A stretch of DNA of 64,000 nt from Epiperipatus broadwayi (lineage: Eukaryota; Animalia; Onychophora). The stretch's first letter is position 1, and each line of letters opens with the position of its first letter. Shown one piece after another: positions 2,031 through 56,974 of this stretch. The notes beneath the pieces were generated by a model. The model ran no database searches and was not told where the DNA came from. It saw only the letters and a program-made list of their open reading frames with translations. The stretch covers positions 3,224,001 to 3,288,000 of the forward strand of contig JAQFVV010000010.1 in assembly GCA_028023455.1 (NCBI GenBank), read 5' to 3'. A program made the position numbers and the translations under genes.

Positions 2031-5000
2031 GTAAATAGATTAAATATGTACATATATATATATATTTGCATAATTATATTTTAAAGTATTGGTAAAATTG
2101 ATATTGCAATATTTAAAATGTCCCTAATTTTAATTACACCTTTATTTTCAAAATACTAAACCCCCACCCCTTCTGTCATTGTTTAATATAAATGTTTCAA
2201 ATTCTATTGAAATTCAGCATGAATAAATTTAAAAATTACCAAGTTATTTTTTTATCAAATGATATAATTTTAAATTGCAAGTGTAATATGAAGTTATAAA
2301 TATATACACATTTACCCTGCTTAGCGATTGACTATTTAGCGATATTTCACAATAGCGATCATCATCAATTTATACCCACTACTTTGATTTACAATCGATT
2401 TTTCACTTAAACGGTCAAGAAAAAATTAAAAAAAAAAAATTTTTGTCAGACATTTTGAATTTTGTGTCACTGATGACATCAAAGATAGGTATATTAAATT
2501 CATTTAACCCAAAAGCAAAAGTATATTATTGTAATATGTATACAGGTAATGACTTTGCTGTAATTGTATATACATACAATATTTTATTCATAAAACACTT
2601 AAAATATCTATAATTACTGAACCTATAATATTGTATACATCATATATAATAACACAGCAAATGTTCATCCACTTTTTTAAAAAAAATACGTATATATGTT
2701 CTACAATAATATCAATAAATTAAAAATCCTCCTTTTTCTTTTCAAAAACTTTATTTTCTTATCTCAATACTGAACATATACAGTATATATATTTATATAA
2801 TACAAAATTCCAACATTTCAACGTTGATTTATAATTAAATAATGTAAAAGAAAGAGTAATAAAATATAGCAGTGGGAGAGAGATATCCTTGAAAATGACT
2901 GTATGAAGATAAACAGTTGAAATGTTGGAGTTTTGTATTATATAAATACTGTATATACAGTATATATATATATATATGTTCAGTATTGAGATAAGAAAAT
3001 AAAGTTTTTGAAAATGAGAAGGATTTTTAATTTGTTGATAATACTGTACATATAAGTGTTGAATGTCTTTAGAAAAATTAAACTTTATTTAAATACATGT
3101 ACAGTACTTGGATTATTTAAATAAAGTTTAATTTTTCTAAAGACATTCAACACTTATATTAGATGATGAAATAGTCCAATATATAAATACAGTACAGGAC
3201 AACTAAAATATCATCATCACAAACTTTCAGAAAAACACTAAATATGAATATTAAACTGTGTGTGTGTGTTTCTTAATTACGATATATTATTTTTAGAACA
3301 CCTGGATAATTATGTAAACATAGTTATTGATTTTGTAACTTCTTTTATAAACATGTTGTTTACACTCAAGTTGTTTCAGATTAAAAGAAAAACAACATTT
3401 TAAAACGCAAATGTCGAATTAGATAAGTTTAAAAAGAAAAACAGATTGCATTTAATTAATAATCTTTCTACTCGAATGGGGGGGGGGGAGCACTATTACA
3501 TTAATAAAAATATACAGTAAGAAAAATAAACCTAGCTATGTTTTAGAAAATTAGAAGTTAGATTTTTTACTTTTAAAATAAGTTGATTTTTTACCTTCTA
3601 AAGTTGACTGCTTTACTATACGCATTAAACATTTTGTTACTGTGGAGTGTAGTAATAAGTCTTTATGTTCAATTAAATAATTAAACATTGTTTTTTAATT
3701 TGAATAATTTCACAAAAGTAATAAACATAAATGTACAGTAATATATACTGTAATACAAAGTTAAAAAAAAAGCACTTCAGTATGGATTTTTTTTTTCATT
3801 ACGATGAAAAACTTCTGTGGAAGAATATAAAAACTTTTAAATTCAAATTTAGTTTCACTTTCTCTTTCTCTTTGCTGTTCTGTACTTTTTAAAATGAAAA
3901 TATGCATTTTTTTTCCTAGTGATATAAAATTTTTCTTTTTAGATACCATATTTAGTCATCACTGTCATGAAAAAATCAAGAAATTCTTTGAGCTTGGAAA
4001 CCAATGTTGATATTTTATGTCGACTGGAACTGACCAATTTTTTCCCCATAGACCCCCATTATAATTACGTATTCTGTATACGATATTCTTGCTTAACGAT
4101 GAGTTTTGGAGGACCAATTGTCAGCGCTAAATGGGGTAAAGGTGTATATATATATGAACAAAAAATCTCATGTTGGTTCATATAACAAATCTGGATAAAA
4201 TTTGAAAATTTTTTTGATAGGTGAAGATCTCCAAGCATACTTAGGATTTTCTTCAAATAACAACCTATCTGAGAAATTAAGGATGATATAAGATATACTT
4301 AATTTTTCAAGTAATTCAATAGCATATTTAATATTATAATGATGAAAGTCTTCCTTCTCTTTGCTGTCATTCTTTTCTTCATCTTCATCATTAATTAGTG
4401 ATTAAAAAAATGACAAATACAATGAATATGAACTTTGAATATGTTTATGAATTTTGTTGTTTAAAAAGTTTTTGACTTTGTATTAATGCTTTTAAAATTG
4501 AGAAAATTGAAATAACTTGTATTTATTTATTAATAAATTATAAGCTGCCATTATTTTATGTGACAAAGTAAACATGTTATAAGGCATTTGTATTTTTATA
4601 TTGGACTATTTCCATCATCTAATATAAGTATTGAATGTCTTTAGAAAAATTAAACTTTATTTAAATATTCTAAATACATTCAGCTGTTAGTAATAGCATA
4701 TCAAACAGGTTAATATATGCACAACATTTTGAGAAGTATTATTTCCCCCTCTTCTTCAAGTGTTTCTGGCTTGACCAGTAACAGTACTAGTATGGGATTC
4801 AAACCTGAACCCTTATATTCTTGAGTATTGAATTTTAAAGTAACACTCTAACCAACTGAGTCATCCTGCCAAAGGCAACAGTCAATAGAAATTTCATATA
4901 CTTATCTATGAGGTTCTCCTGATTTTTCCACTTTTTCCTAAGAGCAAAGTTGATTAGTGATTTCCATACATTATTTATAGTCACACTAGGTTGTCTCATG

Positions 5001-8000
5001 GGATTTTTTGCTATTGTCATGTGAGCCTTAAAATTCAATATTCAAGAATCTAAGGGTTCGTGTTCGAATCCAATGCTAGTACTGTCACTGGTCAGGCCAG
5101 CAACACCTGAAGAAGAGGAGGAAATAATACCTCTCAAAATGTGCATATATTAAGCTGTTTGATATGCTATTACTAACAGTTGAATGTATTTGGAATATTT
5201 AAATAAAGTTTAATTTTTCTAAAGACATTCAATAGTTATATTAGATGATGGAAACAGCCCAATATAAAAATACAACTAGAATACCATCATCACAAATCTT
5301 CAGGAAAATACATGTTATAAGACAGTTTTCTCAATCTCTTAGGAAAAGATTGCTTTTTAGTAAAAGGTGTTGTTGACTTAATTTAACAATATAAGCATAT
5401 ATTATTGAAAATTTCAAATTGAAGAAAAATGTGTATTATCATGGTACACTTTTTAAAAAATTGTTGCTACCATGGTTCATCAAAAATAAGACCAGGTCTT
5501 ATATGAATTTTTGTACCAAAAGACACTGCAGGGCATATTTTTTCATGTATAAAAATTACATTTATTGACATACAAATATATACATCTATTCAAAATCTCA
5601 AAGCTACTTCCCAAACATGTTTTTTCAGCAATTCTTCTGTAAATATTTTAATTTTCAGCTAATGATACACATTGGGATATTTATATTTATTTAAATGCAC
5701 AAAAACTTGTCTTGGGTCAAAATATTATTCCATTTAAATTTACTATTAAATCAAGTGTTAACTGAAGACTAACGAGATAGGAATGGTAACAAAAATTAAT
5801 ACAAATAAGAATGATTATCCATACAAAAGCAATGAAAAAATGCAAGGACAAAAATTCCAGTTACAACACACTGCATATTAAATTACAAATATTTATATAA
5901 GACACAACCACATCCATTTATTATCAAGAGCATACATTATAAACATTTTCCAAATTCTTCATAATAGCGCCATTTGGCTATTCTTTTTTAAAACTTTTCT
6001 TTAAGAGAAAGATTGATTTTAAACTCTTTTAGGGGAGAAACAAAAACATTTAAGAAACAAAGCTGATTTTTCTTTTATCTTAGAGAATATTTAATAGCTA
6101 CCATAATCAAATTCTAAAATTAAGTCAAGCATTCTAAATCTAAATATTAAATAAAATAAGTACTTAAAATTACATAAATGAAATTATAAATTATTCAATA
6201 TACTGGTTTGTGGTAAATAAAATTTTAAAAGTTTGTTAAATTGTTAATAAAATAAATAAATTGGTTATCTTAAATACAAGATTTGGCTAAAGGGAAATTA
6301 TTTCTCTATGCACATAGAATTATGTTTGTTGAATGTTCATTAGGAAAATAAATACCATTATAATTTCTATTATCGTTTATTTAAAGCATTAATGTCAATA
6401 TTGTTTATTTATACATTCATTACTTTAGAATTCAATACAGACATTGTGTATTTCAACAAATGAAATCTGTTTATCTGAATGATGCTCTTAACTAGGGCTT
6501 ATATTACAAGCATCCTGAAAAATCATGATAGGGCTTATTTTTTGGTCAGATATTATTTTCAGGGAAACATGGTATTTTAAAATATATTTTCAAAGTCTAA
6601 AGATAAGTACTATTATACACAAACAATAATGATTTCTAAACTATTTCTTTGTTTTATTTAATATAAAATGTTTTGACTATTACATCTTACATTCTTCTTT
6701 AGACTATCATTTTATCTCAGTTATAAAACACGTATTTAAAGAAATGTACTTGAGATGTTTGTTGTTAGTATTATTTTTATATATTGTAGAGATATATGCT
6801 TTAGAGAGAAAAACAAATTTTGTTTTATAAATATCAATTATCATTATGATAAGCCTCTTGAGGATAATAGTAAATACATCCACTTGTTATGCCCATGACT
6901 TAGAGTTCAAATCCAGGCCAAGTAAATCTTGAAAATATTTATAAGTTTACATAAAGCTTAGAATGGTTTTTTTTTTTTTTAAAAAGACAGCCAATTTCAA
7001 TCCATCTATCCATTCATTATCATTTGGTAATTGGAGTTAAAGGGTAAAACAAATGGAAAATTATACAAATTATCACCATTTAGCAGTTGGAAAGCTTGGA
7101 AACTAATGCTTTCTTTATAGTTCTCTAAAAGATGCTGCTGGAAAGACTTTTGCTCTACAGCATGTCATTTACAAGCTGTTTTATCTTTACCTACATGAAC
7201 TATTTCTGATTAACACAAATTTGAATATATGGGAATAAATTTTAAAAGGAAAAACATTAGACTTGTATTATCTAAAAATATAGTAAAACAGGCAAAACTC
7301 TCCATACAGTAGTGCCACTCAGTGCCAGCCAGAGTAATCAATGGATGCCAGAAGGCTTGTGCACTGAGTGGCACTACTTTATGGAGAGTTTTGCCTGTTT
7401 TAATAACAGTTATGAGCAAGCATAAGAAATAGTGATCATGTGATATTTACTGGTTTAAAAATATAGTAATGGAAAAGAGGATATTATGTTTATTTAAAGT
7501 ATAGGAATAAAAAAAACCTAATATAATAAAAAAACTTTTAGATTTATTACAATATATTTGAATTTATACAAGCATTAATGTAATTGATTTATTATAAAAA
7601 TTAAAAATTTTAATAAATTAAATAATTCTTGATAGAATATGAAGTAATGAAGTATTCTTGTGGAAAATTTAATTCAATATCACATGATAAGATCAAAATA
7701 TTTGCTAAGTCATTATGGAAAAGAAAACTGCAAATCATTTGTGAGAAGTAATGGAATATTAATAGATGATGAAAGTGATATTTACATTAATATGTAAAAG
7801 TTAAATAATCATAAATTAATGATAATAAGATAAAAAGAAGAAAAACAAATTTAAATAGAAGTCTAAATAATTAATTTTGAAGTATGTAAAATCTTTTGCC
7901 CTTATTTTGAGATTTTTTTTGTTTCTTTATTTTTATCCTTTTATTTTTGAAATAGTTTTCATTGTAATGACAATCATTATCAGTTTTTTAAACTGAAAAT

Positions 8001-23000: not shown

Positions 23001-26000
23001 GATTAAATAGAATTAGGAAAGAAACAAAAAAAATTACTAATGAAAAAACTAAAAGAAAAAATTGAATAGTGAATAGTATTTTTTTTGAAAGTAGATATTT
23101 TGAAAGATATTTTACAAAGATTGTAATGGAAGATAGAAAAATATATGATCATGTAGAAAGTGTAATTATACTTATTTAAGGCAGAGAACTAAGGCTAAAG
23201 AGATATGAAAGTGTTTCAAAACTATAGAACAAGCTTTTTTATATGTGGTTGAAAATATTAATTAGCAAAATTATAAATAAAATCAAAAATCATTAAAGTT
23301 AAAATTAATTGTCATCCTTTTTGCAGATAAAATAAATGTTTTTGTGTTTGCTATATTGATATATATTATGCCAAATAAAATCACACTCAAATATATAAAT
23401 CTTTTGTTTCTAAATAAACTCAAGACAAAAAGCTATTATGGGCTATTAGAACAAATAGTTTAATTTAAGAGCTATCAATAATAATTAATAATTATCTAGC
23501 AACCTCATTGCTAATCTATTTCTCTAAATATTCCTACCCATTCTTTTTTTGTTACATATTGTAACCAGTTGGTTACATAGCTGCACTAGAAAAAAATAAA
23601 TAATTATTTAGTTGGCAGCATGTTCCTCAGGTTTGAGAATAAAAATTATTTTATTAATGGGGGGAAATAATATTTAAATTTTCTTAGGTCTATTTTTAAA
23701 GGGTCATTATTTAACTCAATATATATATAAAATTCCCATATGATAGTATGAGAATTTCCAAACCTTAAATATATTTAAGAGTTTTTTTTTTAAAAAAAAA
23801 AAAAAAGAAAGAAAGGGAATAATAATAATAATATTTTAATTTTATTAAAACATGCAAAACTCTCCATACAGTATTGCCACTCAATGCAAGCCAGAAGGCT
23901 TGTGCATAAAATCCCCATCTAGTGCCTACTCATCCAATATCCTCAGACTAGTTTCTGGCTTGTGGCCTTTGTCAGTGAGGAGCCTTGTGTCTGAGAGCAC
24001 TGCACCTAGGTCTTAGGATCTAATGCAACCCTCCAGAAGCCACCTTTTATCTACTTAACTACAAAACTATGAGTCTTAATTTGAAAACACAATATTTTCA
24101 ATCCAAGCTCATTAGCTTATATAACCATATGTGTCTGAACTCAGTTCAGTACCCATACATTTTGATGTCTTTGGTTCTTTAATAACCATAGGGTTGCATT
24201 AGATCCTGAGATTTAGGTGCAGTGCTCTCAGATCCAAGTTACTCACTGATGAAGGTCACAAGCCAGACACTAGTCTGGGAATATTGGATGAGTAGGCACA
24301 AGATGGGGATTTTATGCACAAGCTTTCTGGCATCCATTAATTATTTCTGGCTTGCATTGAGTGGCAATACTATATGGAGAGTTTTGCCTGTTTTAATAAG
24401 TTATAAACAAGCATAAGAAATGGTGATCATGTAATGTTTATTGGCTTAAAATCAATCCTGCCTAATAGGATAGTGGTGGCTATGGTTATTAAAGAACCAA
24501 AGTCACCAAAATGTATGGGTACTGAACTGAGCTCAGACCTATATGGCTATATAAGTTAATGAGCTTGGATTGAAAATATTGGTGTTTTCAAATTAAGACT
24601 CATAGTTTTGTAGTTAAGTAGAGATAAAAGGTGGATACTGGATAGTTGCATTAGATCCTAAGATGCAAGACTCCTCACTGATGAAGGCCACAAGCCAGAC
24701 ACTAATCTGGAGATATTGGATGAGTAGGCACTAGATGGGGATTTTTTTGCACAAGCCTTCTGGCATTTATTGATTATTTCTGGCTTGCATTGAGTGGCAA
24801 TACTATATGGAGAGGCACTAATTTAATAACAGTTATAAGCAAGCATAAGAAATGGTATTCATGTGATGTTTATTGTAAATTTTATTTTTAATTAATTTCT
24901 TTATCTCTTTTTAATGAAAAAGAAAAATCAAATCAGTGCAATTAAGTGATTTTCTCATTTTTTATTGCAAGATTTTGTTTTTAATTATAAAGGAATGTCA
25001 AGAATTTTATATTAATTTAAGTTCTTGACTTGTTTTCAATGTCTATGATTAAGGAGGGAATTGAACAATTGTATTTATGAAATTTTATCTAATTAGTTAT
25101 TAAAATTATCATGTAAGAGATAGATTCCAATCAGCTTGTGGGCATGATTGTTCTAAAAAATATATGTGGGGGTGTGAATTAGTGATATTACTCAAATGTC
25201 TGGTGAGGGTAACTGTTGAAGAGATAGCAGACAAGTGTTAATCCTGATGCTGAAAAAGACAGTAGGAAAAGACATTATTCCTAACTTAACTGTTGAAGAG
25301 AAAGCAGTGAAGTTTTAATCCAACTGCTAAAGAGAAAGAAGAGAAGTTTTTACCAAACTGTGGCATAATAGAGCAGGAATCTTAACCAGGCTATTGCATA
25401 TAATATCAGTTTAATCAATGTTTTAGCATACTATGAGTAATCATAAACATGGTTCATACAATGAAAACCATGTCCTAAATTCAGCTAAAATCTAGGCATC
25501 ACCTTTCTCCATGTGACCTACCTTCACTGGAAAAAATGTAGGAAAGGTAAACCCTCCTAAAGTAGTCTGCAATCGTGCCTTCAACTAAGAGCACAAATCT
25601 GTCTCTTACCTGGAAATTCAAGAGAACCAAATGGACAAAAATTGATACTTTTCATTTACCTGGAGTTGCTAAAGACCCAGGAAAGAACAAATTTAACCAG
25701 GCCCATATTTAGAAGCCTTTAGTGAAAAATCCCATCAGAAGCAACTGGAAAGCCCTGCACAAACAAGAAAGACATGGCTAGAGATATTATTTTTTATGTG
25801 TGCACACTCTATTACATTATTGTGATATGTGTTTTTAAGGTTAAATGATAATGAATTCATTATTGTACAACTTTATTTGATTTTTTGAAACTATAGATTT
25901 GATGTTAGAATGTCAAAACTACATTAGATTGCAATGACTTCTCCCTACATTAGAAAGAATTCTTTATAAGTTTTCAAAAATTAATGGATTTTGAATAATA

Positions 26001-29000
26001 ATGCAAATATATTTTTCCAGGAATCATGATGGCATAGAATTGTGAATGGTTTATTTTTATGGGTATCAAATTATTCTGGTGCAGATTTTTAAAAAAATAT
26101 AATTATTTTGATACACTTTTATAAGTAATATCAAGCATTGTATGAGGAGTTTAATTTTTACAATTGATCTCATTACAAATATTAGTCCAGCAATATGTGC
26201 CCTGCATGTATATGTGATCTTTTATTACTTTTTATATGGCATTTTTAATGTTAAGGATAATTAAAAGTGCTTTCCATAAGCTGTAATTTAAAAAAAAAAA
26301 TATTTTATTGAATTAATTATATCAACTATAAATAATATTTGTAAGTTTGCTTATCTATGCGGAAGTATAAAAATAAATATAATTTTTGATCTACATTCAA
26401 TGTGTATATTTTTATGATATTATTTTTTTGTAATAAAATCTTAAACCATCTGTTTGTGTAAATATTGAGAATATAGTTTATTAAAATGAAATCTAAAATA
26501 AAATGATGTATATTATTGTATATAAAATAAAAAAATATTGTTTAAAAAAAAGGAACTGTAATATTTCACATAGACTAACTATGAAGATTATACATTGTAT
26601 TTTTAATGATATTGGCTTTATTATTTAATATTAACTACATCAAGTAGGCATGATGATTTATGAACACTAAATTATAGTTTATACTTTGTGTGTTTGGTTT
26701 TACTTTATTTATTTTATAAATATTATTGTTTTTAAAAAAAAGTCAGTATTTTATAATATAGTGAGATACTTTTGTAATAATGTAATTTTTTTAAAAATAA
26801 ATAAATAAAAATTTATTATTTGATGTAAACAAAAATAAACTTATATGTAATTGCTTATATATAGGAACAGAGTTTTGATTCAGAAGTTCCTACTATCAAA
26901 TTACTCGCAGATGAAGAATTTCCTCCATTCAGAGATAACTCTCTTGACTTAGTCCTTAGTTCCCTTAGGTGAGCATTCTGTTTTTCTTTAATAAATTTAA
27001 TTAACAGCACAATTAAAATATTATTTGTTGATATATAAAATATTTATTAACAATAATGATTTTATTTTCAACATAATATTGATATTAATATAACTTAAAT
27101 GTTTCTGTCTTGAAATATACACCTGTGTTTGTATGGATTTTATTTTTCTTCTTAGTACTGTTATTATCCAATAATATTAACTGTTATTCTAATTCACAAT
27201 TGTTATTCTTATTCTATTCATTATTTTTTTATATGCAATAATGTTTTGTTTCAATTTTCTTCTTTATTATAAATATATATAAATTCAAATGTAATAAATG
27301 TTAACATAACCTTTATCAGTGTGTTTACTACAAAACATCTCATGATCACCTTTTCATATGCTTATACATGCTGTTAATAAGAGTTCCATACAGTAGTACC
27401 ACCAAGTATAAGCCTTCATAATCAATAGATCAGGAAGGTTTGTTATAAAATCCTTATATAGTGCGTACTCATCTAACATTAGATTCTAAAATCTGTGCAG
27501 TGCTCTCAAATCTAAGCATAGTCACTGATGAAATTCACAAGTTAGAAACTAATCTGGGGATGTTGAATGAGTAGGCATTAGATAGGGGTTTTATGCACAA
27601 ATCTGCCTGTATCCATTGATTATGAAGGCTTTGCACTTAGTGCATTACTGTATGGAGAGTTTGATATTCTTTATCATTCTTATAATATTAAAATGAGATT
27701 TAAATTAATAGTTGTGTTGTAAGGCAAGAGATTATAACTGAGATAATTCTTGGAAAGATTTTTGACAATTGATAAGAATATAATTAAATCTCTTAAAGTT
27801 ATGATAAAAAAAAAGAGGTTTGATAGAATTAATGTTTGTTAGCAGTTATGACAGACTCCATTAAAGTTGAGTAGTCAGAAAAGATAATTTAATTTTTCAA
27901 TGTCTAAGTATCAATTAAAAATGAATTAATTTGGACATAGAAAGATGCAATTGCATTTGTAAGAACTATTGTTGAGAAATAGTGAATAGTAAGAAAGAAG
28001 GCAATAGTCATTACACTTTCCAATTACTGGGCAATATAGATTTGATAATTTTCTATTGTCATTTTACCATCTAGAATAAAAATAAGCAGATATCTATTTA
28101 TTGATCAATACTGGATGATTAGTTGAGCTAGTTATTTGATAGAAATGTCCTAAGCTTGAATGCATTCTGAAAATTTTTGAGATGAATGTTTTGAAAAGGA
28201 AATATAATAGTTTATTCCTACAATATGCTCGAATGATTGTAATGAAATCAATCCTGAGATCAAAACAAGTTTCAATCAATTTTATTATGAAATACACTAT
28301 ACACAGTAATAATTAATATTAGTATAATTTTTCATTAACAATGAAAATTAATGTTTTAAAACTGGTGAATACATATACCATTGATGAATTATATGGTTTT
28401 CTTTATCTCTTGATAGAATTGTTTGATTGATTGCAAAGTAGTGAATAATAAACCTAATTGTAGATCATGTATTATGATTAAACTGATGTAATATTTTGCA
28501 ATAAATGAAAATAGAATTCATATTACAAAGTATCTAAGAGTTTAAATATATATTCAAACTTTATTAGAATAGGCTACTGGTTCAAACTTTTAGTTTCTGA
28601 GTAATTGTTCTCAATTTAATTTTGGTACAATATTAAGTGATATATGTGCATAACATAGTTAATATCTACATTTAAGAGAATCAGGGATAAAGAATATAAA
28701 ATCCAAATTAATAGACTTTGTTTAATTCCAGAATTAGAGTTACTGGATTGTCAAATTTCAGACTGATTAAATCTTAACCCTTTGCATATAATACTTATGT
28801 TCTCTATGAATTTGTCCACAGCCACATTCTGATAACATTAAGGTTTATCATTTCTCTTAGTATAAAATACAAATCTAATTTAGAAAATGAAAATTGATCT
28901 AAGATTTAACAATATTTTTTAATGTTTGACTTTGAAAATGTATATAGTATATTGAATAAAATATTTGGAAAATCTGCACATATATAATGCAATATAAATA

Positions 29001-32000
29001 AAGTGTATTTATTTGATATACTCACATGTATTATTTTCACTCATAATTACTCTCTAAAATTATTTTAGAAAATTAACAAAGAGAGTGCTACAAATAAACA
29101 CATGAAAAGACATGTGTATGTAAATTATGACATTTGAAAAAAACTGATATAAAGATGTGGGGAGACTACTCCTGCTCAGCAATGAGACTGAAAGTGTTGG
29201 GATTGTTTTAAAGTGAAAATGCAAAAGAAACAGCACTCAAAAGGCTAAAAATAGTTCCGAAGAAAGTGTAAAACATTAGAACTCTGTTAAACTGTACTTA
29301 TGGAATTAATAGTGGATATGCTTATTATTGTTATTGTTATGATAGTGAAGTTAAGCACATATTGTCTAAATGTTTTCTAGTTTAACGTCTATCTTATGTT
29401 AATAAGCATTATTATATACCTATTTTTGGAAATTGTTTAATTTATTTTTGCTGTCTGACTGGTCTTTAGGGATCCTCAGAACATAGCAGAATGGTTGGAA
29501 GTTAACAATTGGCAGATCCAGTGAAGTGAAAGGATAAAATTAGCAGATAAGAACAGCTTCTATTGTGAATAACAAAAAATAGCAGCACTAAATTTTGTGA
29601 TTACGGAACTTTGATATAAATAACATGTGCTCATGGAAAAGATATGTAGAACATGTAGAATACATTTTCATTTATAAAGTAGAAGATGCTTCTCTATTTT
29701 TCTAGTCAAGACATAATACAACTTGCAAATAGACTTACTGATCCTAAACAATCAGAGGAATAAAGAAGTTATAGAAATATTAAATGGTTATTTTAATCTG
29801 AAAATATCTAAATGGGCAGTGGAGCTGAGATTGAGAAATCTGAAACAATTACCACAGGAAAAATACTTAGATTACCTTGCTTTAAGGAAGTTAGTGAAAC
29901 ACTGTGATTTTGGTCCAGAAATATTGATTTTTTTATTAGAACAATTTTTATACAGTATAATGGATGAAAGTTTTAGAAAAATACTGCTGAGTGATCCTAA
30001 TTTAAATTATAAACTACCAATGGATAAATGTGTCATGCAAGAGACTATGTTAAGCAATGTCTCCCAAGTATGGATTGCTTCAAAGTTAGAAAAATTTTCT
30101 ATTACTACAGAAATTTTTTTTTAAATTTGCTGATTTTCATTAGAGAGAAAAAGGAGCAGACATGTTATTGTTGCAGGAAATCTGGATGTTTAAAAATTAA
30201 TTGCAAGCATAACAAAAAAATATTGAGAAATTATGTCTAAAGAAGATTTAGCTGCTGTTTGTTATTTCAAAGATCATGGAGCTACTAATAAGAATAAGGC
30301 AGACTACAATCTTGGGAAGAAATGGAGTTTAAGAAAATAAATATTAAAACATTAAATGATAGCATAATGGACCACATATTATTAGTATTGCGATAAATAG
30401 GTTACTTGAAGTTGACAGTGGAGCTGTGTTGTTACTGAAGTCATTTAAAAGAATGAATTAAAATCAGTGAAAACTAAAAAAAAGAAAATCACACTATAAA
30501 ATACTGATATGATAGCAACAGATATTAATAGAAACAACATCAATATTTGCAGAAAAATAATAGTTCTTGTCAAGCTGAATTCGAGGTGAAGGTTTTTTAC
30601 ATTGCACATAGTAAATAAAGATTTTTCATCCACTCTTAGGAAGAAACTGGTTTGGACCTCTAGATATATACATAAACATATTAAAAACAATTCAAGTGGA
30701 AATTCTTATGAAAAAGAGATACTCAGGATTATTTAGATCCGAATCAGCTGAACTGAGAACTAGACCAGTGAATGTTGAATTGATGAAAGCTTCATAACCG
30801 ATCATAGGCAAACTTTGTAAAGTACCATTTGCCTTGATGGATAAAGTTGAGAAAACATTGAATGAGTTAGTCTCTAAAGAAGTTTGAACATCAAATGAAG
30901 ATTCCTCATGGTCACACCAGTAGTAAAGATTGTAAAACCAGCTGAAAGTTTGCAATTGTGTGGCAATTACAGCCTGAGAAAATATATAAACAAATATTCA
31001 TATTCGATTTGAAGCATATGTGAAGAATTCGTGCTAATTAGTTCACGAAAGTAGATCTAAAGGTTGCATTCCATCAAAGACCATTAACAGAAAAAAACCG
31101 CAGAATTGTTAACTTTAACCACTCATAATGGACTATATAAATGTAATAAATTATCTTATGGTATTTCCATAGCACCAAACATTTTCCAGACAAAAATGGA
31201 TATGCTGTTTAGAACTAGGATCAGCATAATTTTCTACCTAGATGACATCTTAATTACTGCAATAATAGAAGCATATTTAGAAAAGTGAGTGGATATAGTC
31301 TGCTCAAAACTAGAAAAAGTCAAAGCCAAAGTAAATGCTAATAAATGTATATGATCTATGAAAGAAATAAAATTTTTTGGACATATAATAAATGCAAATG
31401 ACTGATATCATCTACACTCTGACAGAGTAAAAGCAATAAAAAATGCTGAGAAACCTAAAAATGTAAAAGAACTGCAGGTGTTTTTAGGACTTTTTAAATT
31501 TTTACAAAAGTTTTGTGAAGGAAAAATCATACTGTTTACTGCTATTGTACTAACTTCTCAAAAAGAAGCAATGTTGTACCTGGACCAGTGAATATAACAT
31601 GACTTTTAAAAATGCTAGACTTGTTAACCTCATAAAATTACCATAGTTATCTGGATATTATAATAATAACTGATGCATCCGAATAGTATCATAGTTGTTA
31701 TGTCACATCTGTATTATGGAGAACATCCGATCATCTATGTTTCCAGGATTTTTACTTCGGTTGAAAAAAAATATAGTCAAATTGATAAGCAAGCATTGAT
31801 CATCATTTTCACAATCAAGAACTTCCATCAATACATTTATGGGCAGAAATTTCAAATTTGCACTGAGTATCACCCCCATAACAGGTATTTTTGGCACAGA
31901 AAAAAAATCCCAAACATGTGAGCCATTGAATGCTACATTGGATAAATAGGTTGCCTAGTTATGATTATGAATTACTTTACAAACCTGGAAAAAAAATTGG

Positions 32001-35000
32001 TCATGCAGATGCTTTTTTCCAATTACAAGGAAAAAGAATGTGTAATTAAAGAAATAAATTACATAGACTCAATGAACTCTGACAATATAAACAGCATAGT
32101 TACAGCCAAGTAATAAAAGATATGCCAACTTATGAAGTGGATCAAATTTGGCTGGCCAAAGACACATCTTTGGGAATTAATAAATCAATTTGGAATGTAT
32201 AAGATGGGCTTACAGTTTGCAATGGATGCATGCTGATCACCAATTGCCTACTTGTTTCTTCCAAGGGCACAGCACATGTATTGAATCTGTTACATCAAAG
32301 CCATCCTAGGATTGTCAGGATGAAAATGTTGATTTGATCATACGTATGCTGGACAAATTTAACAAGCAACATCTTTGCACATGGTTAAAAAATGCTGTAA
32401 TTGTCAACAAAGGGCTAAATTGCTGATTAAATAATTAGAAATGTGGAAAAGGTCTATGACTCCTTGGACTTATATTCATTTAGACCATACTGGCCCATTG
32501 AATGGATATATTATCTTGATACTGGTAGATGTCTATTCGTGATAGATTGAATATAAGTTGATGAAAAGTACAAGTACGCAGTGCATAATAACGGTTTTAA
32601 ATGAAATATTCACTATGCATGCATTCTCCAATCTGACAGTGATAGACAACAATACAGGCTTTACATCACAAAAGTTTAAACAGTATTTGCAGGATAAAGG
32701 ATCTTTATTCTATCGTATCATTCTGAAAGTAATAGAATTGGAGAGAAAGCTGTACAACATGTAAAAAACATGCTGTTAAAAACAAATAAAGAATGTATCT
32801 GAAGCTTTAGTGGAAATGATGTATACTCAGCACTTTATGTCTAGCATTGCAACAAATAAGAACCCAGCAAAGCTATTTATGTGTCTCTTTCCACATCTTT
32901 TAAACAAACTATTATCTACTAATAGTAGAGATAGAAATCAAAATTAGATAAAATTTTTGGCAGGTGAAAATATGTGGATGGATCCACAATCTACTAAAAC
33001 AAAAATGGATGCCTGGTATAATAATGAAAGTGTTATTGAAGCAAGTAAGACTAGTAAAATTACAGAATGGAAGAGAATTTAAAAGACATATTAATCACCT
33101 TTGCCATTGTTATGAGGACACTTTGCCAGATATTTATCAAAATAAAGTGTTGGAAAATAAAGTAATGAAAAGTGATCCATTATTGGATGATGCAGATATT
33201 GATCTAGATTTAGAAGTATTGACAGAAAATAAGGAAGAGATGTACATGAATAACAACATAGTTAACATCTCTAATAGATGAAGTCGAGAGAGTAATTTTT
33301 AGAACTTCACAAATTTGCTGACTGCCTGTTAAATTGAAAGATTATGTCTGCCACTAAGTCTGTGAGTTTCTAGAATAGGAGAGAAGTGGAATTTCTGCAT
33401 ATATATAATTTAGTATAAATAAAGTGTATTTATTTTATATACTCGCACAGATTATTTTCACTCATAATTACTGACTAAAATCACTCTAAAAAATTAATAA
33501 AAAGATTGCTGTAAATAAATACATGAAAAGACAAATGTATGTAAATCAGGATGCTAGAAAAAAACTGATATAAAGACATGGAAGACTACTCCTATGCAGC
33601 AATAAGACTGAAAGTGTTTGAATCATTTTAAAGTGCAAATGCAGAAGAAGCAGCCCTCAAAAGTCGGAAATATGATTCCGAAGAAAGTTTAGAATTTTAG
33701 AACTCTGTTAAACACTTAAGGAATTAATAGGGGTTATGCTTATTATTGTTATATTAGTGAAGTTAAGTGCATATTGTAAATATTTTCTAGTTCAATATCT
33801 ATCTTATTTCATGCTAAATATTTAATTTATTGTCACTATCTGATTGATCATTAGGGATCCTCAGAACATAGCAATGTTGAAAATGATTTGAAAATTTTAA
33901 GACTTTTCAATTGAATCTAAAAGAAGAAATATTTTTTAGTAAAACATTTCTATGCATTCCTGCAGCAATATTTAACTATTTTTTAAACATTATATACTTA
34001 AGAAATCTTCATAATATAAACATTTTATAATCAAAAATAAATATTTGTTTTAAGTTATAGAATATAGCAATGTACACATTTTTATTTATTCTGGTACAGT
34101 TTAGCATAATAATTAAAATGGCAAATTTAAAGACTAAATGTTTTTGGATTAATTCCGAGCTGAGAAAAGATTTTAATATCAGTTTGCTCAGTGAATGGAA
34201 CTATTATTTTGATGTTTTAATATCACTCACTTTCCAAGCGACTGACTTTATAGTAATTAATATTATTATTACATTAATAATCATTTCTTTCTTCTTTTTT
34301 TTTTTTTAACAGTATGCATTGGGTCAATGATTTACCTGGATGTTTTAGACAGGTAAGATTTCTGCAAATGACTATATCTATATGTGTGTATATATGCTAC
34401 ATACGCATGTATTTGTAAATATAATATAAGAGAATCTTTCATAAAATCATATCAGTTTGAATTTTTGTCATAATATCAAAAATATTCTGTAAATAATACT
34501 GATTATTATTAGTGTATCAGATTTTTATTTTTTTGTTTAAAAAAAAAACCATATATCATCAAAAAAAATCAACATTACCATTAAAAAATTAACTTGGAAA
34601 CTTCTTCTAAAAAGATTTTAAATCAAATTTAATTATAGATTAAGAATATTTATGGTTTCAGAATTATTATTCATATAGATTGATTACTGTTACTATATTT
34701 TTAAAAAAATATATTGGATGTCATATGCTATTAATTTATATACATCTGTATTTTGAAAATAAATATAGTTTTAATTTACGACTTTAATTAAAAATAAAAC
34801 ATTTTCTTCAGTCATAATAGTTCTTATTTTATATGTATATATACAAAACAATACAATATTATTCTCACTTAAATTATTTCTTTTCTTAATTTGAATATAA
34901 AAATTAATATTAAACCTATATTTTTAGAGCATGACCAATATTAAAAATATATAATTATAGAACATGAAATTGAGTCTAGCCACAATTTCTATCTATTTAA

Positions 35001-50583: not shown

Positions 50584-51014
50584 ATATATATTAATGATTA
50601 TTTAGATACTATGCCAGTGCTTAAATTTAATCAACTGCTTTGTAATCATTTGAATACTAGATTTCCAAAGGAAGATATAGATGACTGGAATGCCTTGGAT
50701 CCTTTTATAATGAAAAATAACATAGAGCATGGAAAAGAGTCTAAAAGGTTTATTTGTAAAAAAAAAATATAAATCCATAATAAATAATAATGATAAAAAT
50801 CATATACGCTTATATATAATTTTAGAACAGTATGGTAATGAAATTTTTAGTGAATGAAAAAGTTAAAATTGAAGTAATCAAATTATTTAATGATTTAGTT
50901 TCCATATGTCTTAAAAGACCAAGAATATAAAGAGTTTTTGGTACTTGTTATTTTTGTGTGATTTTTCAAGCTTCCAGCACCAATTATGAACATGATTTTA
51001 GTATAATGAATACA

Positions 51015-51837
51015 GTCAAATATCAGCCTTTCACGCTAATTGTGCATACGCTTTGCAAGTGTTAATAATAAATGAATACTTTCTCATCAATACAAGATAT
51101 AGTATTTATGCAGGAATAAAAGGAATCATCTTATTCCTACGACTCAAACGCTTATATATGAGCAAATCTGAAGTACTGGCAAAGAAAGTGTGACGATGGA
51201 ACAGTCACTTTAAATTACTATATATAATGTCTGAATGAATGACGTCGCTGAAATTATCTAGAATTTACTAAACATCATTCCAACTGAAACTTAATAATAT
51301 GTAAATAAGCATTTATTTTATATAGTGAATGTAAACAATTGTATTACAGTCAAATATCAGCCTTTCATGCTAATTGTGCATACGCTTTGCGAGTGTTAAT
51401 AATAAATGAAAGTAACACTCGCAAAGCGTATGCACAATTAGCATGAAAGGCTGATATTTGACTGTAATACAATTGTTTACATACACTATATAAAATAAAT
51501 GCTTATTTACATATTATTAAGTTTCAGTTGGAATGACATTTAGTAAATTCTAGATAATTTCACCGACGTCATTCATTCAGACATTATATATAGTAATTTA
51601 AAGTGACTGTTCCATCATCACGCTTTCTTTTCCAGTACTTCAGATTTGCTCATATATAAGCATTTGAGTCGTAGGAATAAGAGGATTCCTTTTATTCCTG
51701 CATAAATACTATATCTTGTATTGGTGAGAAAGTATTCATTTATTATTAACACTCGCAAAGCGTATGCACAATTAGCATGAAAGGCTGATATTTGACTGTA
51801 ATACAATTGTTTACATACGCTATATAAAATAAATGCT
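51015..51837. mobile_element. Palindromic concatemer of a 334-nt monomer, 13-bp TSD
   Basis: tacagtcaaa at 51011 and 51345; tttgactgta ending 51466 and 51800 (period 334 on both arms); inversion point 51410-51413; tataatgaataca at 51002-51014 and 51838-51850. Confidence 0.92.
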
Positions 51838-53726
51838 TATAATGAATACAATAAAATCAAAATTCCATAATAGTACTCTTTTATAATGAACATTTGGATA
51901 ATGTAATAATAATTAAGTATTATATCTTGTCAGAAAAGCAAATAAACCTAGACAGTTATAAAATTTGAGTAAATCATAAAGAATGATATGAAAAAATAAA
52001 GAACTAATTATTATTATTGAGTTATTATTTTTAAATTATGTTCTATAATTTTCATTACATATAAACTATTTGGTGCACCAACTATTTTATATGAAAACAT
52101 GCAAATAAATTCTATAATTTGATGTCTTTATATATTTTTTGTTGCACATTGTTTGGTTTACTGAGCTCAGCTCTTGTATTTTTAGCTCAGAAACAGTCAA
52201 CTTTTAGAAGGAACTGTGGTATTCACCTATCTATTAATGATTATAATTCTTTATGGAAAGGCAGCACAATTGCAGATCAGAGAATCTCACCAGAATCAAA
52301 TCTTTATTTAAAAAATGAAGTACCTAAGTTATTCAGGGATTAATTTATCTATTCATTTATTGGCAGTTTAAGTATTATAATCAATTTTTTACCATCTTTA
52401 TTAACACCTTTTAGATTGTTCCATTCAGTTAAAAATAATTTATTTATTGCATATAAATTAATATCTTAATATTGGATGAACTCATTTTGCACTTTTAAAA
52501 TTTACTACAAAACTCAGAAAGGCTGATGCTTAAATTTTTATAGATTTGTTGTATAACTAAAAAAATATTTTTGATTTCTTTTACCATCTTAATATCACTC
52601 TTCCTTTTTTTAATCTCAAATTGATTATGCAATTATTTGCTTGTTATTTACATCATCTCTGAAATGAAAATTGTTTTTCGCTCCACCACTTTGTCTTTTG
52701 TTATGGTATAAAACAATGTGTTTTCTCCACTTGAGTTTTTTTTAATGATCACTATCTATTGCAACAATCATTGGGTTCCTTAATTAATTATTTTGCCTGT
52801 TATATATCTATTAACTTTGCATCAATTCTTATCCAAGAAGATTTTTTCTATCTTTTACTATTTTTATTATTTTGTGCTCTCACTATTTTCTTTCTTTTAG
52901 TCTTTTGTTGTTTATTTGTTTTTAAACATTTTTTGGTATACCCATTTTGTTTTAGTTTACATCTCATCCTCTCTAAGTTATAGTAACTTTAATTATAAAG
53001 CAAATCACTCAATTCTCTAGCTTATATAATACATGACAAAATAACTATAATGCCATCTTTAATCAACTAAAATGATTAGTGATTCCCATATTGTTCTAAC
53101 TTTCAGGAATGAGACTCTTGCACTCCTATCTGATAACCACTTATTAGTCTTTCTATAAATGGCACTGGAGTAGAAAGCTGCTATGATTTTATCATGCAGT
53201 AACTTTACTTTTTCTTATCATGTTTTGCTTTAGTTCTGGACTATACTTTTTTTTTTTAATACATTTTAAATATAATTTTTTTTAAATGCTTTCTCATTGT
53301 GATCTGGTATTTATTATCATTGTTTATTTGTTAAAAATATTTTTAAATTAATTTTAAAAAGCTGTCTTATGTTTTTAATAATTAAAGATGGATTATGTCT
53401 AAATTTGAATAATTTAAAATGTTCAAAAATGAAAATAATAATGATGTAATTATAAGAATCTATTCATAGTTGATACTATGAAATTTGAATTATAAATTTG
53501 TCTTAAGTTTTATTCATTAATCTTGCTTTTTTATTATTACCATATAATTTGTTAATATTCCAATTATTGTTAACTGTAGAAAGTTATTAAAACCAGAAAA
53601 ATAATATTGCTGCTAGTGATTGGATGTTACATTGATTATCACATGAAGTTACATCTTGATAAATAGGGGGGTCTTGTAATTCATCTCAAATCTTTTAAAA
53701 CATCAAATCTAACTAAATAGTTTTCT

Positions 53727-54130
53727 GCCAATAAACATCACAAGATCACCATTTCTTATGCTTGCTTATAACTGTTGTTAAAACAGGCAAAACTCACTAT
53801 ACGTATTGCCACACACAGCAAGCTAGAGTAATCAATGGATACCAGAAGGCTTGTGCATAAAATCTCCATCTAGTGCCTACTCATCCAATATCCCCAGACT
53901 AGTTTCTGGCTTGTGGCCTTCGTCAATGAAGAGCCTTAGATCCTAAGATCTAGCTGCAGTGCTTTCACATCCAAGGCTTGTCACTGACGAAGATCACAAG
54001 CCAGAAACTAGTCTGGGGATATTGGATGAGTAAGCACTAGATGGAGATTAAATGCACAAGCCTTCTGGCATCCATTGATTACTCTAGCTTGCTATGTGTG
54101 GCAATAAATATAGTGAGTTTTGCCTGTATG
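53727..54130. mobile_element. Palindromic copy of family HH-A, 12-bp TSD
   Basis: Arms 53783-53935 / 53975-54127; aaatagttttct at 53715-53726 and 54131-54142; hammerhead motifs at 53891-53932 (minus) and 53978-54019 (plus). Confidence 0.9.
53978..54019 (+). ncRNA. Type-I minimal hammerhead ribozyme motif, catalytic boxes intact
   Basis: ttgtca-CTGACGA-AGATcacaaGCCA-GAAACTAGTC-tgggga; stems I and II weakened by substitutions. Confidence 0.7.
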
Positions 54131-56974
54131 AAATAGTTTTCTAATGACTTTTTATAGAGATAATTGTGTAAATAACTGCTTTATTTCTAATGATAGATTG
54201 TTATCTTTTTCGTTTCTGTGATACTAAAAATTATCAAAATACAATCAGCCTTTATCACTTCCATTTATGTTTTTGATTTCAGAACAGAAATCATAACATA
54301 CTGATATAAAACTATCAAAAATATATTTTCATCTCTTGTAATTAAAATGATTGTTGTCTACTTTTATTTTCATTATGTCTTTATTTTGTCTATTCATATT
54401 TTGTTTATTTTTAATAGTTTTTAATGTGACAGTGTATTAGTACATCAGTCTTTCTATACTAACTGTTATTAAATTTTAATATATATTTTTAAAATATATA
54501 TTTTGTAAGTGTTGTTTGCTGTAAAAAATAAACTAATACATTTAATTATTTACTTTTTTAGAATGTAGTAATATTTTTAAATTGTAATGGTTTAATTATG
54601 AACTTATATTTAGATCTTGATTTTATATAATAAAAGTAAAAATACAATCAAAGTTGATATTTTCTAAAACATATAACATTAAAAAAAATATTACGCTTAA
54701 AAATTTAAATAAAAAAATATATTTATTTTCAAACACTGTTATAATTTATAACCTATTTTAAATTTCAGTCTACTGACAAATGATATTTATGAGAAAAAAA
54801 TCAATGAAGAAAATAATCCTTAAACAGTTAAATGTTACGTATTTATTAGTCAGAAAAAAATTACAAAATAATACATATTTTCTTATTAGTACAGTAATTT
54901 CAAATTGGACTTTTTTTAAAAAGAAGAAATGATCCCTCACCCTCCCCAATTTATCATTGGAATATCAACTGAGGGTCAATTCAGCAGCAGTAAAAGATCA
55001 AGTTCTCTATTGGAATTATTTTAGGAAGGAAAAAATTATATTAATAATAAAAAATCTACTGCTTCTAATATGTAAACAGTTATAAGTTTCACTTTTGTGT
55101 GTGTGTGATATACCAAAGATTTTCTTTCACTTTATCATTGTTTAAATTTTTAACAAATGTAGATTTTCAGTATTCATTTAGCATTTTTTTTTTTTTTCTG
55201 TCGTAAAACATTTGAATTAATTATATTTGAGAAATGAGATTCCCTACTGCTTGAAAAAAAATAATTTCTTTATATTGAAATTATTAATAAGATACTAATT
55301 TTATTATTACTGTAAAATAAATTACATTTGATAAACTTATTACCATAATTCAAGTTGGTATGGATTACTTTTTTGTGTTTTTATTTTGCCATTTTATTTA
55401 TTTATTTGACAAATAAATAAATATATTTAATTTCTTATGAATTATTTGCTTCATTGATGTTTACTCTAAAGCATCATTCAGAAGTTGAAAGTGAAATTTA
55501 AGATAGATCACAAGCTATAACCTTATCTATTTTTAATATATCCTATATTCTTGTTTATATAGCTGTTTTTTCCCCCTCTTATTTTTAGTTTGAAATGTAA
55601 TTAATATATATAAACTTATTCACAGATCAATGAAGTTTGATTATTTTATAATTCACAATTCAGATTTTAAAAAGTCATTTTAACAAACTTGAAAACAAAA
55701 CCTAATCTCTCATATTAATGTTAATTTATTGGTCACATAAAAAGTAATCACTTTTATCTGATGAATGGATTACATTAATATAAGATAATGGGTATTGTTT
55801 ACAAATTTGTTAAAATGATTTTTTAGGAATCTGATTAATGAATTATAGGTTCATGAATAAACTTAATGTATGTGTGTGTGTGTTAATATCAAATACCATT
55901 TTATCATCATCAATGAAAGTTCCCCCCCCCACTTTTGCAATATATACTGCTCAGTTATTCTATAGTAACATCTTTGCATATAATACTCTTATTTGTTTAT
56001 GTAGCCATTGTGAACTTCTTTTATAAGAACAGCATATTTTTAATAATAAGTTTGAATAGTTACAACTATCTTCTTGATAGTTATCTTGGAAATGGGTGTG
56101 TGAAAGAGCCTTGCTATGCAATGCAATTACATATGGTTTATGCATATTTCAAATACTTTCTTAAAATTTAATTATGTGGACAATTTTATATAGCATTGAA
56201 TACAATTCTCTATGGCAGGTTTGCTACTTGTAATTATTGAAGAAGTATGCTAAGAATATATAATGCAATATTTTTCTTTTTCCTGAAAAGTAATAGAACA
56301 AATCACATTATTTTATCCATTCTTCTGACTTTATACTCCTGTCATCAGATAGTTTTTTCATCACTATGGTTTTAATTTGTTTTTTCTTCACTTGAGTGAC
56401 TTGTTACAACAGAAACCTTTTCAGCTTGGATAAATACCATGGTTATTGTTATATAGCAACTCTATTTCAATTTTCTTCTCTCACTTTCTTTTGTTTGACT
56501 CAGTAAAGAATGACCTAATGAGTTAACTGTGTACTAATTATGAAGGTACATATTACAAAATTTCCTCTTATTTTTTGCAATCTGGTTATGTATCAGTAAT
56601 TTCTTTGTTTGTTCAAAATATAATTGCCTTTGTAATCAGCTGAAGAAACTAAAAACGCATTAACACAACTTATTTAAATTTGATCATAATTTATAGTTAT
56701 CCTTTTAACATCTATTATTTATCAGAATCTATTATAGTTTCAGTTTCTCATTTTTGAGTCAAAGCACAAATTCATTGTGTTTAATGCAATTTTTTTTTAT
56801 TTTGCTGTTTTTATTTTTCAGCATTGATTACATCATTTTCAGAATTACAAATTGTTTTAATTTAGAAATGAATGAATTCGAAAACTATTGCAGTCTATTT
56901 CCACTAACATAACAATTCTTAAATGAATCATATAACAAATCTCTTTTTTAATTATTTTCTCTGCACTTGGAAAA

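Follow-up and report, generated by a model that had tools for sequence, protein, structure and literature searches.

Positions 23842-24875 of the 64-kb window analyzed here (the whole stretch of Epiperipatus broadwayi contig JAQFVV010000010.1 from 3,224,001 to 3,288,000) contain two copies of a non-coding unit of 432-452 nt, inverted and placed head to head, in which the right arm reads A-x-B-A and the left arm reads B-A. This stretch is very probably a single old, decayed insertion of a high-copy, non-coding hammerhead retroelement that is non-autonomous and mobilized by a Penelope-like element (PLE); that is, an animal retrozyme of the type without long terminal repeats (non-LTR retrozyme). 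The original prediction, made from the sequence alone, also placed it among non-coding hammerhead retroelements of the retrozyme or Penelope-like kind, and repeat analysis reproduced both the arrangement and the coordinates that it had given for the two arms. The copies in the window are dead and are decaying neutrally.

The right arm (24190-24875, plus strand) contains 1.6 units in a partial tandem, or pseudo-LTR, arrangement. Its segments, all on the plus strand, are A1 (24190-24443), x (24444-24479), B (24480-24640), and A2 (24641-24875), and this direct copy was delimited by direct repeats, blastn, and alignment. The direct repeats are 91-95% alike and are spaced 452 nt apart for the first 20-nt block and 432 nt apart for the remainder, because A2 is without 20 nt (a 20-nt indel). 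The arm ends with a tail of about 45 nt (24831-24875, plus strand, located by alignment; ...ATGTTTATTG), and the stretch matching this tail is internal at 24399-24443. The left arm is the upstream inverted copy (23842-24191, minus strand), defined by inverted-repeat blocks, blastn, and alignment. It corresponds to the reverse complement of B-A, which it matches over seven collinear blocks of inverted repeat (89-97%); it is truncated at its 5' end at the x/B boundary and has its 3' end, with no tail, at a "short" site (...GCATGTTTTAATAA). A probable, degenerate target-site duplication was read directly from the sequence, with the left copy at 23832-23841 (TATTTTAATT) and the right copy at 24883-24893 (TATTTTTAATT). 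The GC content of the unit is approximately 33%, and the window overall is very AT-rich (22-35% GC). No open reading frame (ORF) in the element exceeds 64 aa, so the element is non-autonomous at best and, as was originally proposed, needs a helper reverse transcriptase (RT).

The 64-kb window was searched by blastn with the plus arm of this locus (locus 1), and three further loci of the family were found. Nine arms were aligned and then mapped on a 432-nt reference unit. All 4 loci in the window are head-to-head inverted pairs. Locus 2 (53727-54130, minus strand), identified by blastn, alignment, and an inverted repeat with 164-nt arms (91%), consists of a direct copy with a tail at 53727-53941 and an inverted tail-less copy at 53969-54130. 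Its hammerhead motifs are at 53891-53932 (minus) and 53978-54019 (plus), and a 12-bp target-site duplication, AAATAGTTTTCT, is present at 53715-53726 and 54131-54142. Locus 3 (7284-7455, plus strand; blastn and alignment) is heavily 5'-truncated, with an inverted tail-less copy at 7284-7363, a direct copy with a tail at 7360-7455, and an 11-bp duplication, TAAAAATATAG, at 7273-7283 and 7456-7466. Locus 4 (27319-27668, minus strand; blastn and alignment) is the most diverged (70-77%). Its direct copy with a tail is at 27319-27480 (minus strand), its inverted tail-less copy at 27477-27668 (plus strand) includes a hammerhead motif at 27519-27560, and its 8-bp duplication, CTTTATCA, is at 27311-27318 and 27669-27676.

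The outer 3' ends of the arms fall at only two fixed sites approximately 45 nt apart, and each of the 4 loci has one arm of each kind. At all 4 loci, the short arm stops near ...GCCTGTTTTAATAA (also written ...GAGAGTTTTGCCTGTTTTAATAA), and the tailed arm stops about 45 nt beyond the short site, at ...ATGTTTATTGG (also written ...GATGTTTATTGG). The inner (5') ends vary by locus and lie at unit positions of about 37, 190-220, 270, 305, and 343. Read along the longer arm, every insertion begins with the inverted copy, which is 5'-truncated and tail-less, and continues with the direct copy, at whose end the tail lies. Arms within a locus have diverged by 4-10%. Because the target duplications of loci 2-4 (12, 11, and 8 bp) bracket the whole structure, each inverted structure represents a single insertion event.

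These ends bear on one claim of the original prediction that was not supported. The different start points of the two arms at locus 1 had been taken to mean that the unit is circularly permuted, and fixed ends in other copies had been named beforehand as the observation that would speak against permutation. Fixed outer 3' ends at two sites, together with variable inner 5' ends, are what all 4 loci display. The pattern is one of 5' truncation plus partial tandem (pseudo-LTR), not of free permutation.

Within the unit, a near-palindromic stretch, UUAGAUCCUAAGAUCUAG (53942-53968 at locus 2; unit positions of about 190-220), lies just upstream of hammerhead stem I. Four of the 8 arm 5' ends are in or beside it (one arm of locus 1, both arms of locus 2, and one arm of locus 4), and it may be a preferred joining point of two cDNAs. 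The tail forms an imperfect hairpin in the minimum free energy fold; a consensus fold of five copies was weak (-2.1 kcal/mol, with one compensatory pair), and we make no claim of a conserved tail hairpin. At locus 2, the inverted pair folds into a long hairpin (53861-54049), which cmscan rates as generic and microRNA-precursor-like, far below the gathering score. Inverted-pair insertions such as this one could feed small-RNA pathways if transcribed.

PLE insertions have been described as having frequent 5' truncation, partial tandems in the form of pseudo-LTRs, an adjacent inverted 5'-truncated copy upstream, and a tail of 30-40 bp at one end (PMC8557442). In work with purified PLE protein, both strands of an AT-rich target were cut and extended, and two adjacent internal RT start sites delimited the tail (PMC11167929). 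The family in the window shares with the autonomous PLEs (Penelope/Poseidon, Neptune, and Naiad; PMC8557442, PMC11167929) the 5' truncation, the partial tandem, the inverted copy, the tail at one end, the two RT start sites, the use of both target strands, and the AT-rich targets. It differs in that the tail is approximately 45 nt rather than the quoted 30-40 bp, and in that the template is a non-coding RNA of about 450 nt, so that the recognition module must lie within it.

The scheme that we infer, with its helper enzyme, self-cleavage, and circular RNA, is based on published PLE biochemistry (PMC11167929) together with the insertion anatomy described above. RNA of more than unit length would be bound in trans by a PLE RT/GIY-YIG protein, whose endonuclease would cut both strands of an AT-rich target with a stagger of 8-12 bp. 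Reverse transcription would then be primed from each 3' OH and would begin at either of two internal sites, which lie about 45 nt from each other; the cDNA from the distal start site would receive the tail, and the cDNA from the proximal site would be tail-less. The two cDNAs would extend toward each other over variable distances and be joined in the middle, and the product would be a tail-less, inverted, 5'-truncated copy beside a direct copy (1.6 units at locus 1), with the target duplication around all of it. That the template exceeded one unit in length is shown by the direct arm of 1.6 units. Dimer-type hammerheads on multimeric transcripts would release monomers of 432-452 nt, here from after C24275 to C24707, and the released monomers could be circularized by a host ligase.

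A 30-nt hammerhead core had five matches within 3 mismatches in the window compared to 0 in 100 shuffles. A sixth, more diverged copy is the one at 27519-27560 in locus 4, in agreement with the six copies that had been counted originally. The copy in A1 (24240-24281, plus strand) is decayed, with stem I TTACTCA, stem II GGTC, and a core of GAC rather than GAA; its predicted cleavage is after C24275. The copy in A2 (24672-24713, plus strand) is likewise decayed, having GAC rather than GAA, AAUC rather than AGUC, and UGGAGA as the 3' strand of stem I, with predicted cleavage after C24707, 432 nt from the A1 site. In the inverted arm (23940-23981, minus strand), GAAAC, GUC, and the 6-bp stem I are intact, and the CUGAUGA box reads CUGACAA (G8 to A). 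The locus 2 copies either have U3 or are mismatched in stems I and II. In the plus arm, the two tandem hammerheads have in common a core change of GAA to GAC (24268 and 24700), whereas GAA is kept in the inverted arm; this change may have been in the template or may have been spread by gene conversion.

The hammerhead is restored at the level of the family. The monomer at 24190-24662 was compared with public DNA and RNA-library assemblies, and contigs matching at >=80% were used. The majority letters restored the hammerhead at all 5 positions where A1 deviates from it. At 24268, C to A (giving GAA) was the majority in 89% of the DNA depth and in 99% in three RNA-library runs, and the majority letters also gave T to C at 24256 (stem II), T to C at 24239 and A to C at 24241 (both in the 5' strand of stem I), and A to G at 24280 (3' strand of stem I). 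The corrected family sequence, UCCUCA-CUGAUGA-A-GGC(CACAA)GCC-A-GAA-ACUAGU-C-UGGGGA, passes a minimal-hammerhead descriptor; it has a stem I of 6 bp, CUGAUGA with a bulged A behind it, a stem II of 3 bp, GAA, the palindrome ACUAGU, and then C. The chance rate of this descriptor was 0.25 matches per 128 kb of shuffled windows, and 0 with a palindromic helix III. The conserved core (C3 U4 G5 A6 N7 G8 A9, G12 A13 A14, A15.1-U16.1, and H17) is complete in the family-majority sequence. Helix I (UCCUCA/UGGGGA) has 6 bp including one G-U, helix II (GGC/GCC) has 3 bp and the loop CACAA, and helix III (ACUAGU) consists of a single A-U pair with the palindromic loop CUAG. A subfamily consensus, seen at loose ends in two RNA runs, has AGC...GCU for GGC...GCC, so that the pair closing stem II is A-U in place of G-C (agreement of only 0.66-0.68).

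When two copies were folded together, a double hammerhead was predicted at -23.8 kcal/mol, compared to -10.4 kcal/mol per monomer. The predicted dimer has an intermolecular stem I, a 6-bp intermolecular ACUAGU helix III, an intramolecular stem II, and unpaired core boxes. The family-majority letters give a complete minimal type-I hammerhead motif, and this motif is predicted to fold as a dimer. The RNA of the whole monomer was predicted to fold at -124.4 kcal/mol, compared to -101.7 +/- 5.6 kcal/mol for shuffles (z = -4.0).

The family is very abundant, with 118,484 contigs matched at >=80% in one DNA run, and DNA contigs bridge from the tail through x into B. RNA-library contigs of three organisms also contain the family, at approximately one-quarter of the DNA-run depth per letter read, and these include one more-than-unit joint ("goes back 416") as well as opposite-strand joints. 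It is likely that the family is transcribed. Metagenome scans for the hammerhead core gave 0 matches.

Several observations weigh against identifying this element as a PLE-mobilized retrozyme. A non-exhaustive scan of the window ORFs of >=75 aa found no PLE RT/GIY-YIG ORF, and the single Pfam match among the ten longest window ORFs was an RNase H of the LTR type (31673-31918). At locus 1, the target duplication is about 10 bp and degenerate (TATTTT(T)AATT), and the low-complexity, AT-rich flanks make its call uncertain. None of the 6 window copies has an intact hammerhead; each has at least two changes in the core or stems, and none passes the descriptor, so that the hammerhead consensus of the original prediction stands as a consensus but not in individual copies. 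Our own descriptor, when run on the raw window, gave one match, at 5755-5802, which is probably due to chance. Rfam reported no hammerhead at gathering score in the whole window or at E<=10 in two loci, where the mutated copies were scanned. The only matches at E<=10 were sub-threshold generic microRNA-hairpin matches, which are due to the inverted repeat. Minimal hammerheads of this sort were found in a 2014 study by means of its own relaxed descriptor (PMC4209133). The hammerhead does not stand out by its conservation among the window copies, with 11.8% mismatches compared to 12.7% in the remainder of the unit; this is as expected if dead insertions decay neutrally, and six dead copies carry no information on selection acting on source copies. 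A bulged A does follow CUGAUGA, and a second A lies between C11.1 and G12 (CUGAUGA-A-GGC...GCC-A-GAA). This additional A, which separates stem II from G12 on the side facing the usual bulged base, is atypical, and it could be an A.A pair or a symmetric bulge. Finally, the RNA evidence consists of assembled contigs only, without strand, read ends, or a control for DNA carry-over.

A second scenario concerns the form of the template. The original prediction held that a circular RNA was copied past unit length from both target ends; copying past unit length and from both ends was borne out, but a circle is not required. A closed RNA of approximately 430-450 nt, produced by hammerhead cleavage and ligation and copied in rolling-circle fashion from both target ends, is possible but doubtful. 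The direct arm does exceed one unit, the monomer folds stably, a more-than-unit joint was found in an RNA-library contig, and circular RNAs have been documented for animal retrozymes (PMC7229834). However, a linear multimeric transcript accounts for the same data, and tandem genomic copies yield the same joints as circles. The argument from circular permutation falls because the 3' ends are fixed, the different start points being 5' truncations. The shared change of GAA to GAC, if it was in the template, would have blocked self-cleavage. Moreover, PLE protein accepts unprocessed RNA in vitro, and RNAs with a mutated ribozyme are inserted equally well (PMC11167929). The tandem A copies share three variants that are absent from the inverted arm, as if one unit had been read twice, but this signal is weak (3 sites for A1 and A2 compared to 2 for A2 and the minus arm). 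We considered shared variants as a test of one template read twice and rejected them as too weak, at 3 versus 2 sites among the three A copies of locus 1.

A foldback or miniature inverted-repeat transposable element (MITE)-type DNA transposon, with long terminal inverted repeats, internal deletions, and an incidental hammerhead-like motif, would superficially resemble these loci in its fixed outer ends, variable interior, inverted arms, and flanking duplications. The cmscan rating of the locus 2 hairpin as a generic microRNA-like precursor, although below threshold, would also agree with such an element. However, the ends of the insertions are systematically unequal, with the 45-nt tail on one side only at all 4 loci, and the length of the target duplication varies (8, 11, and 12 bp). 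One arm includes more than one unit in direct tandem, the arm junctions differ at every locus, and in many genomic copies contigs continue through the supposed terminus (the tail) and reach x-B. Chance is also a very unlikely source of the full hammerhead of the family consensus. Taken together, these data make a DNA transposon of this type very improbable.

Marginally less credible still is a short interspersed element (SINE) or processed RNA inserted by the RT of a long interspersed element (LINE) with twin priming (5' inversion). Twin priming does yield head-to-head inverted segments inside one target duplication of approximately 7-20 bp. However, neither a pair of fixed 3' termini nor a 45-nt tail on one side is a product of twin priming, and there is no poly(A) or simple-repeat tail at either end of the insertions. 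No tRNA-like or Pol III module was found. Inversion in 4 of 4 loci is also far above the usual frequency of twin priming, since twin-priming inversions of L1 are usually much rarer. The least credible scenario, a satellite or assembly artifact in which a collapsed or chimeric tandem satellite gave false inverted joins, is suggested by the extreme abundance of the family and by the trouble that tandem and inverted PLE structures cause in assemblies (PMC8557442), but it is hardly tenable given four loci in unique flanking DNA with different junctions and, at loci 2-4, their own target duplications, arms diverged by 4-10%, which is not expected of an artifact, and opposite-strand joints in independent assemblies as well.

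The animal non-LTR retrozymes (Cervera and de la Pena 2020, PMC7229834; Li, Clavereau, and Pollet 2026, bioRxiv 10.64898/2026.07.22.740005) have recently been reread as non-autonomous PLE derivatives (bioRxiv 10.64898/2026.07.22.740005). Like them, the PLE-mobilized family proposed here has a short, AT-rich, non-coding unit with one type-I hammerhead each, tandem or partial tandem copies, very high copy number, target duplications of more than 4 bp, a stable monomer fold, a proposed dependence on PLEs, and a dimer-type helix III as in the amphibian families. It is without an LTR, a primer-binding site (PBS), or a polypurine tract (PPT), has two hammerheads 432 nt apart within 1.6 units, and has duplications of 12, 11, and 8 bp. 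In contrast to these retrozymes, the unit of 432-452 nt is at or slightly above the published RNA range of 170-400 nt, although repeats of 150-450 bp are also quoted for animal retrozymes (PMC7229834). The insertions are dispersed inverted and partial-tandem copies rather than long arrays, and there is the extra A opposite the bulged base at stem II.

Compared to the minimal hammerheads of PLE pseudo-LTRs (Cervera and de la Pena 2014, PMC4209133), the motif likewise lies in the repeated part (A of A-x-B-A) and occurs in opposite-strand pairs, which have been reported at distances of 100-700 bp for Penelope-like hammerheads (PMC4209133). A bulged base following A9, a G10.1-C11.1 pair, and a palindromic helix III are listed for the minimal hammerheads of PLEs (PMC4209133); the family sequence has the bulged base and the palindromic helix III, but its second A separates C11.1 from G12. 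However, there is no RT/GIY-YIG ORF between the repeats here, and stem II has 3 bp and stem I has 6 bp, compared to a helix II of 7-8 bp in the PLE motifs of Schistosoma. These stem dimensions are closer to the canonical metazoan type-I hammerhead than to the Schistosoma PLE motifs. The LTR retrozymes of plants (Cervera et al. 2016, PMC4918200) are also non-autonomous, with hammerheads in their terminal repeats and a monomer that is released between two ribozymes; in contrast to this family, they have type-III hammerheads, true LTRs with PBS and PPT, 4-bp duplications, and Gypsy-type helpers, none of which are present here.

The element class, the dimer-type hammerhead, and the link to PLEs have already been published (PMC4209133, PMC7229834, bioRxiv 10.64898/2026.07.22.740005), and little sets this family apart from known elements: its unit is at the upper limit of the size range, its tail measures about 45 nt, and stem II has the extra A. 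These loci add no new principle. Their value is as clean anatomical evidence, with the full PLE insertion signature in 4 of 4 retrozyme-type insertions, and this anatomy supports the proposal of PLEs as helpers, for which the grounds so far have been chiefly co-occurrence and the similarity of pseudo-LTRs. The anatomy also shows that approximately 450 nt of non-coding RNA must be enough to specify both RT start sites. For genome annotation, the family accounts for a highly abundant class of repeats and for many inverted-repeat hairpins that lie in introns and between genes.

Two other non-coding families in the window, unrelated to this one, have the same layout. At 51014-51837 is a second, unrelated family with a 334-nt period, in which the head-to-head arms are each longer than one unit and 97-99% alike. 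It is a young insertion, with a 12-bp duplication, TATAATGAATAC, at 51002-51013 and 51838-51849 and a tail of approximately 40 nt at the right end only; no hammerhead core was seen in it. The third family, at 4584-5309, is a head-to-head inverted pair with a 12-bp duplication, ACATGTTATAAG, at 4572-4583 and 5310-5321 and a tail of approximately 38 nt, again at the right end only. It has a CUGAAGA box beside a hairpin and no GAAA box, and ARAGORN found no tRNA in it.

We tentatively suggest that the PLE machinery of this genome might mobilize a guild of short RNAs by way of a small 3' recognition module (the tail region), with the hammerhead dispensable for insertion. The dispensability would follow because the insertion at 51014-51837 has the PLE signature without a recognizable hammerhead, if that is upheld. 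If the suggestion is true, these elements of approximately 330-450 nt would represent minimal templates found in nature and would define the requirements of a PLE RT for starting at two sites.

Remnants of an LTR retrotransposon were also observed at 29723-33281. Neighboring ORFs there resemble gag and integrase fragments, with no Pfam match, and the ORF at 31673-31918 matches the RNase H of RTs (PF17917/PF17919, E = 2e-14).

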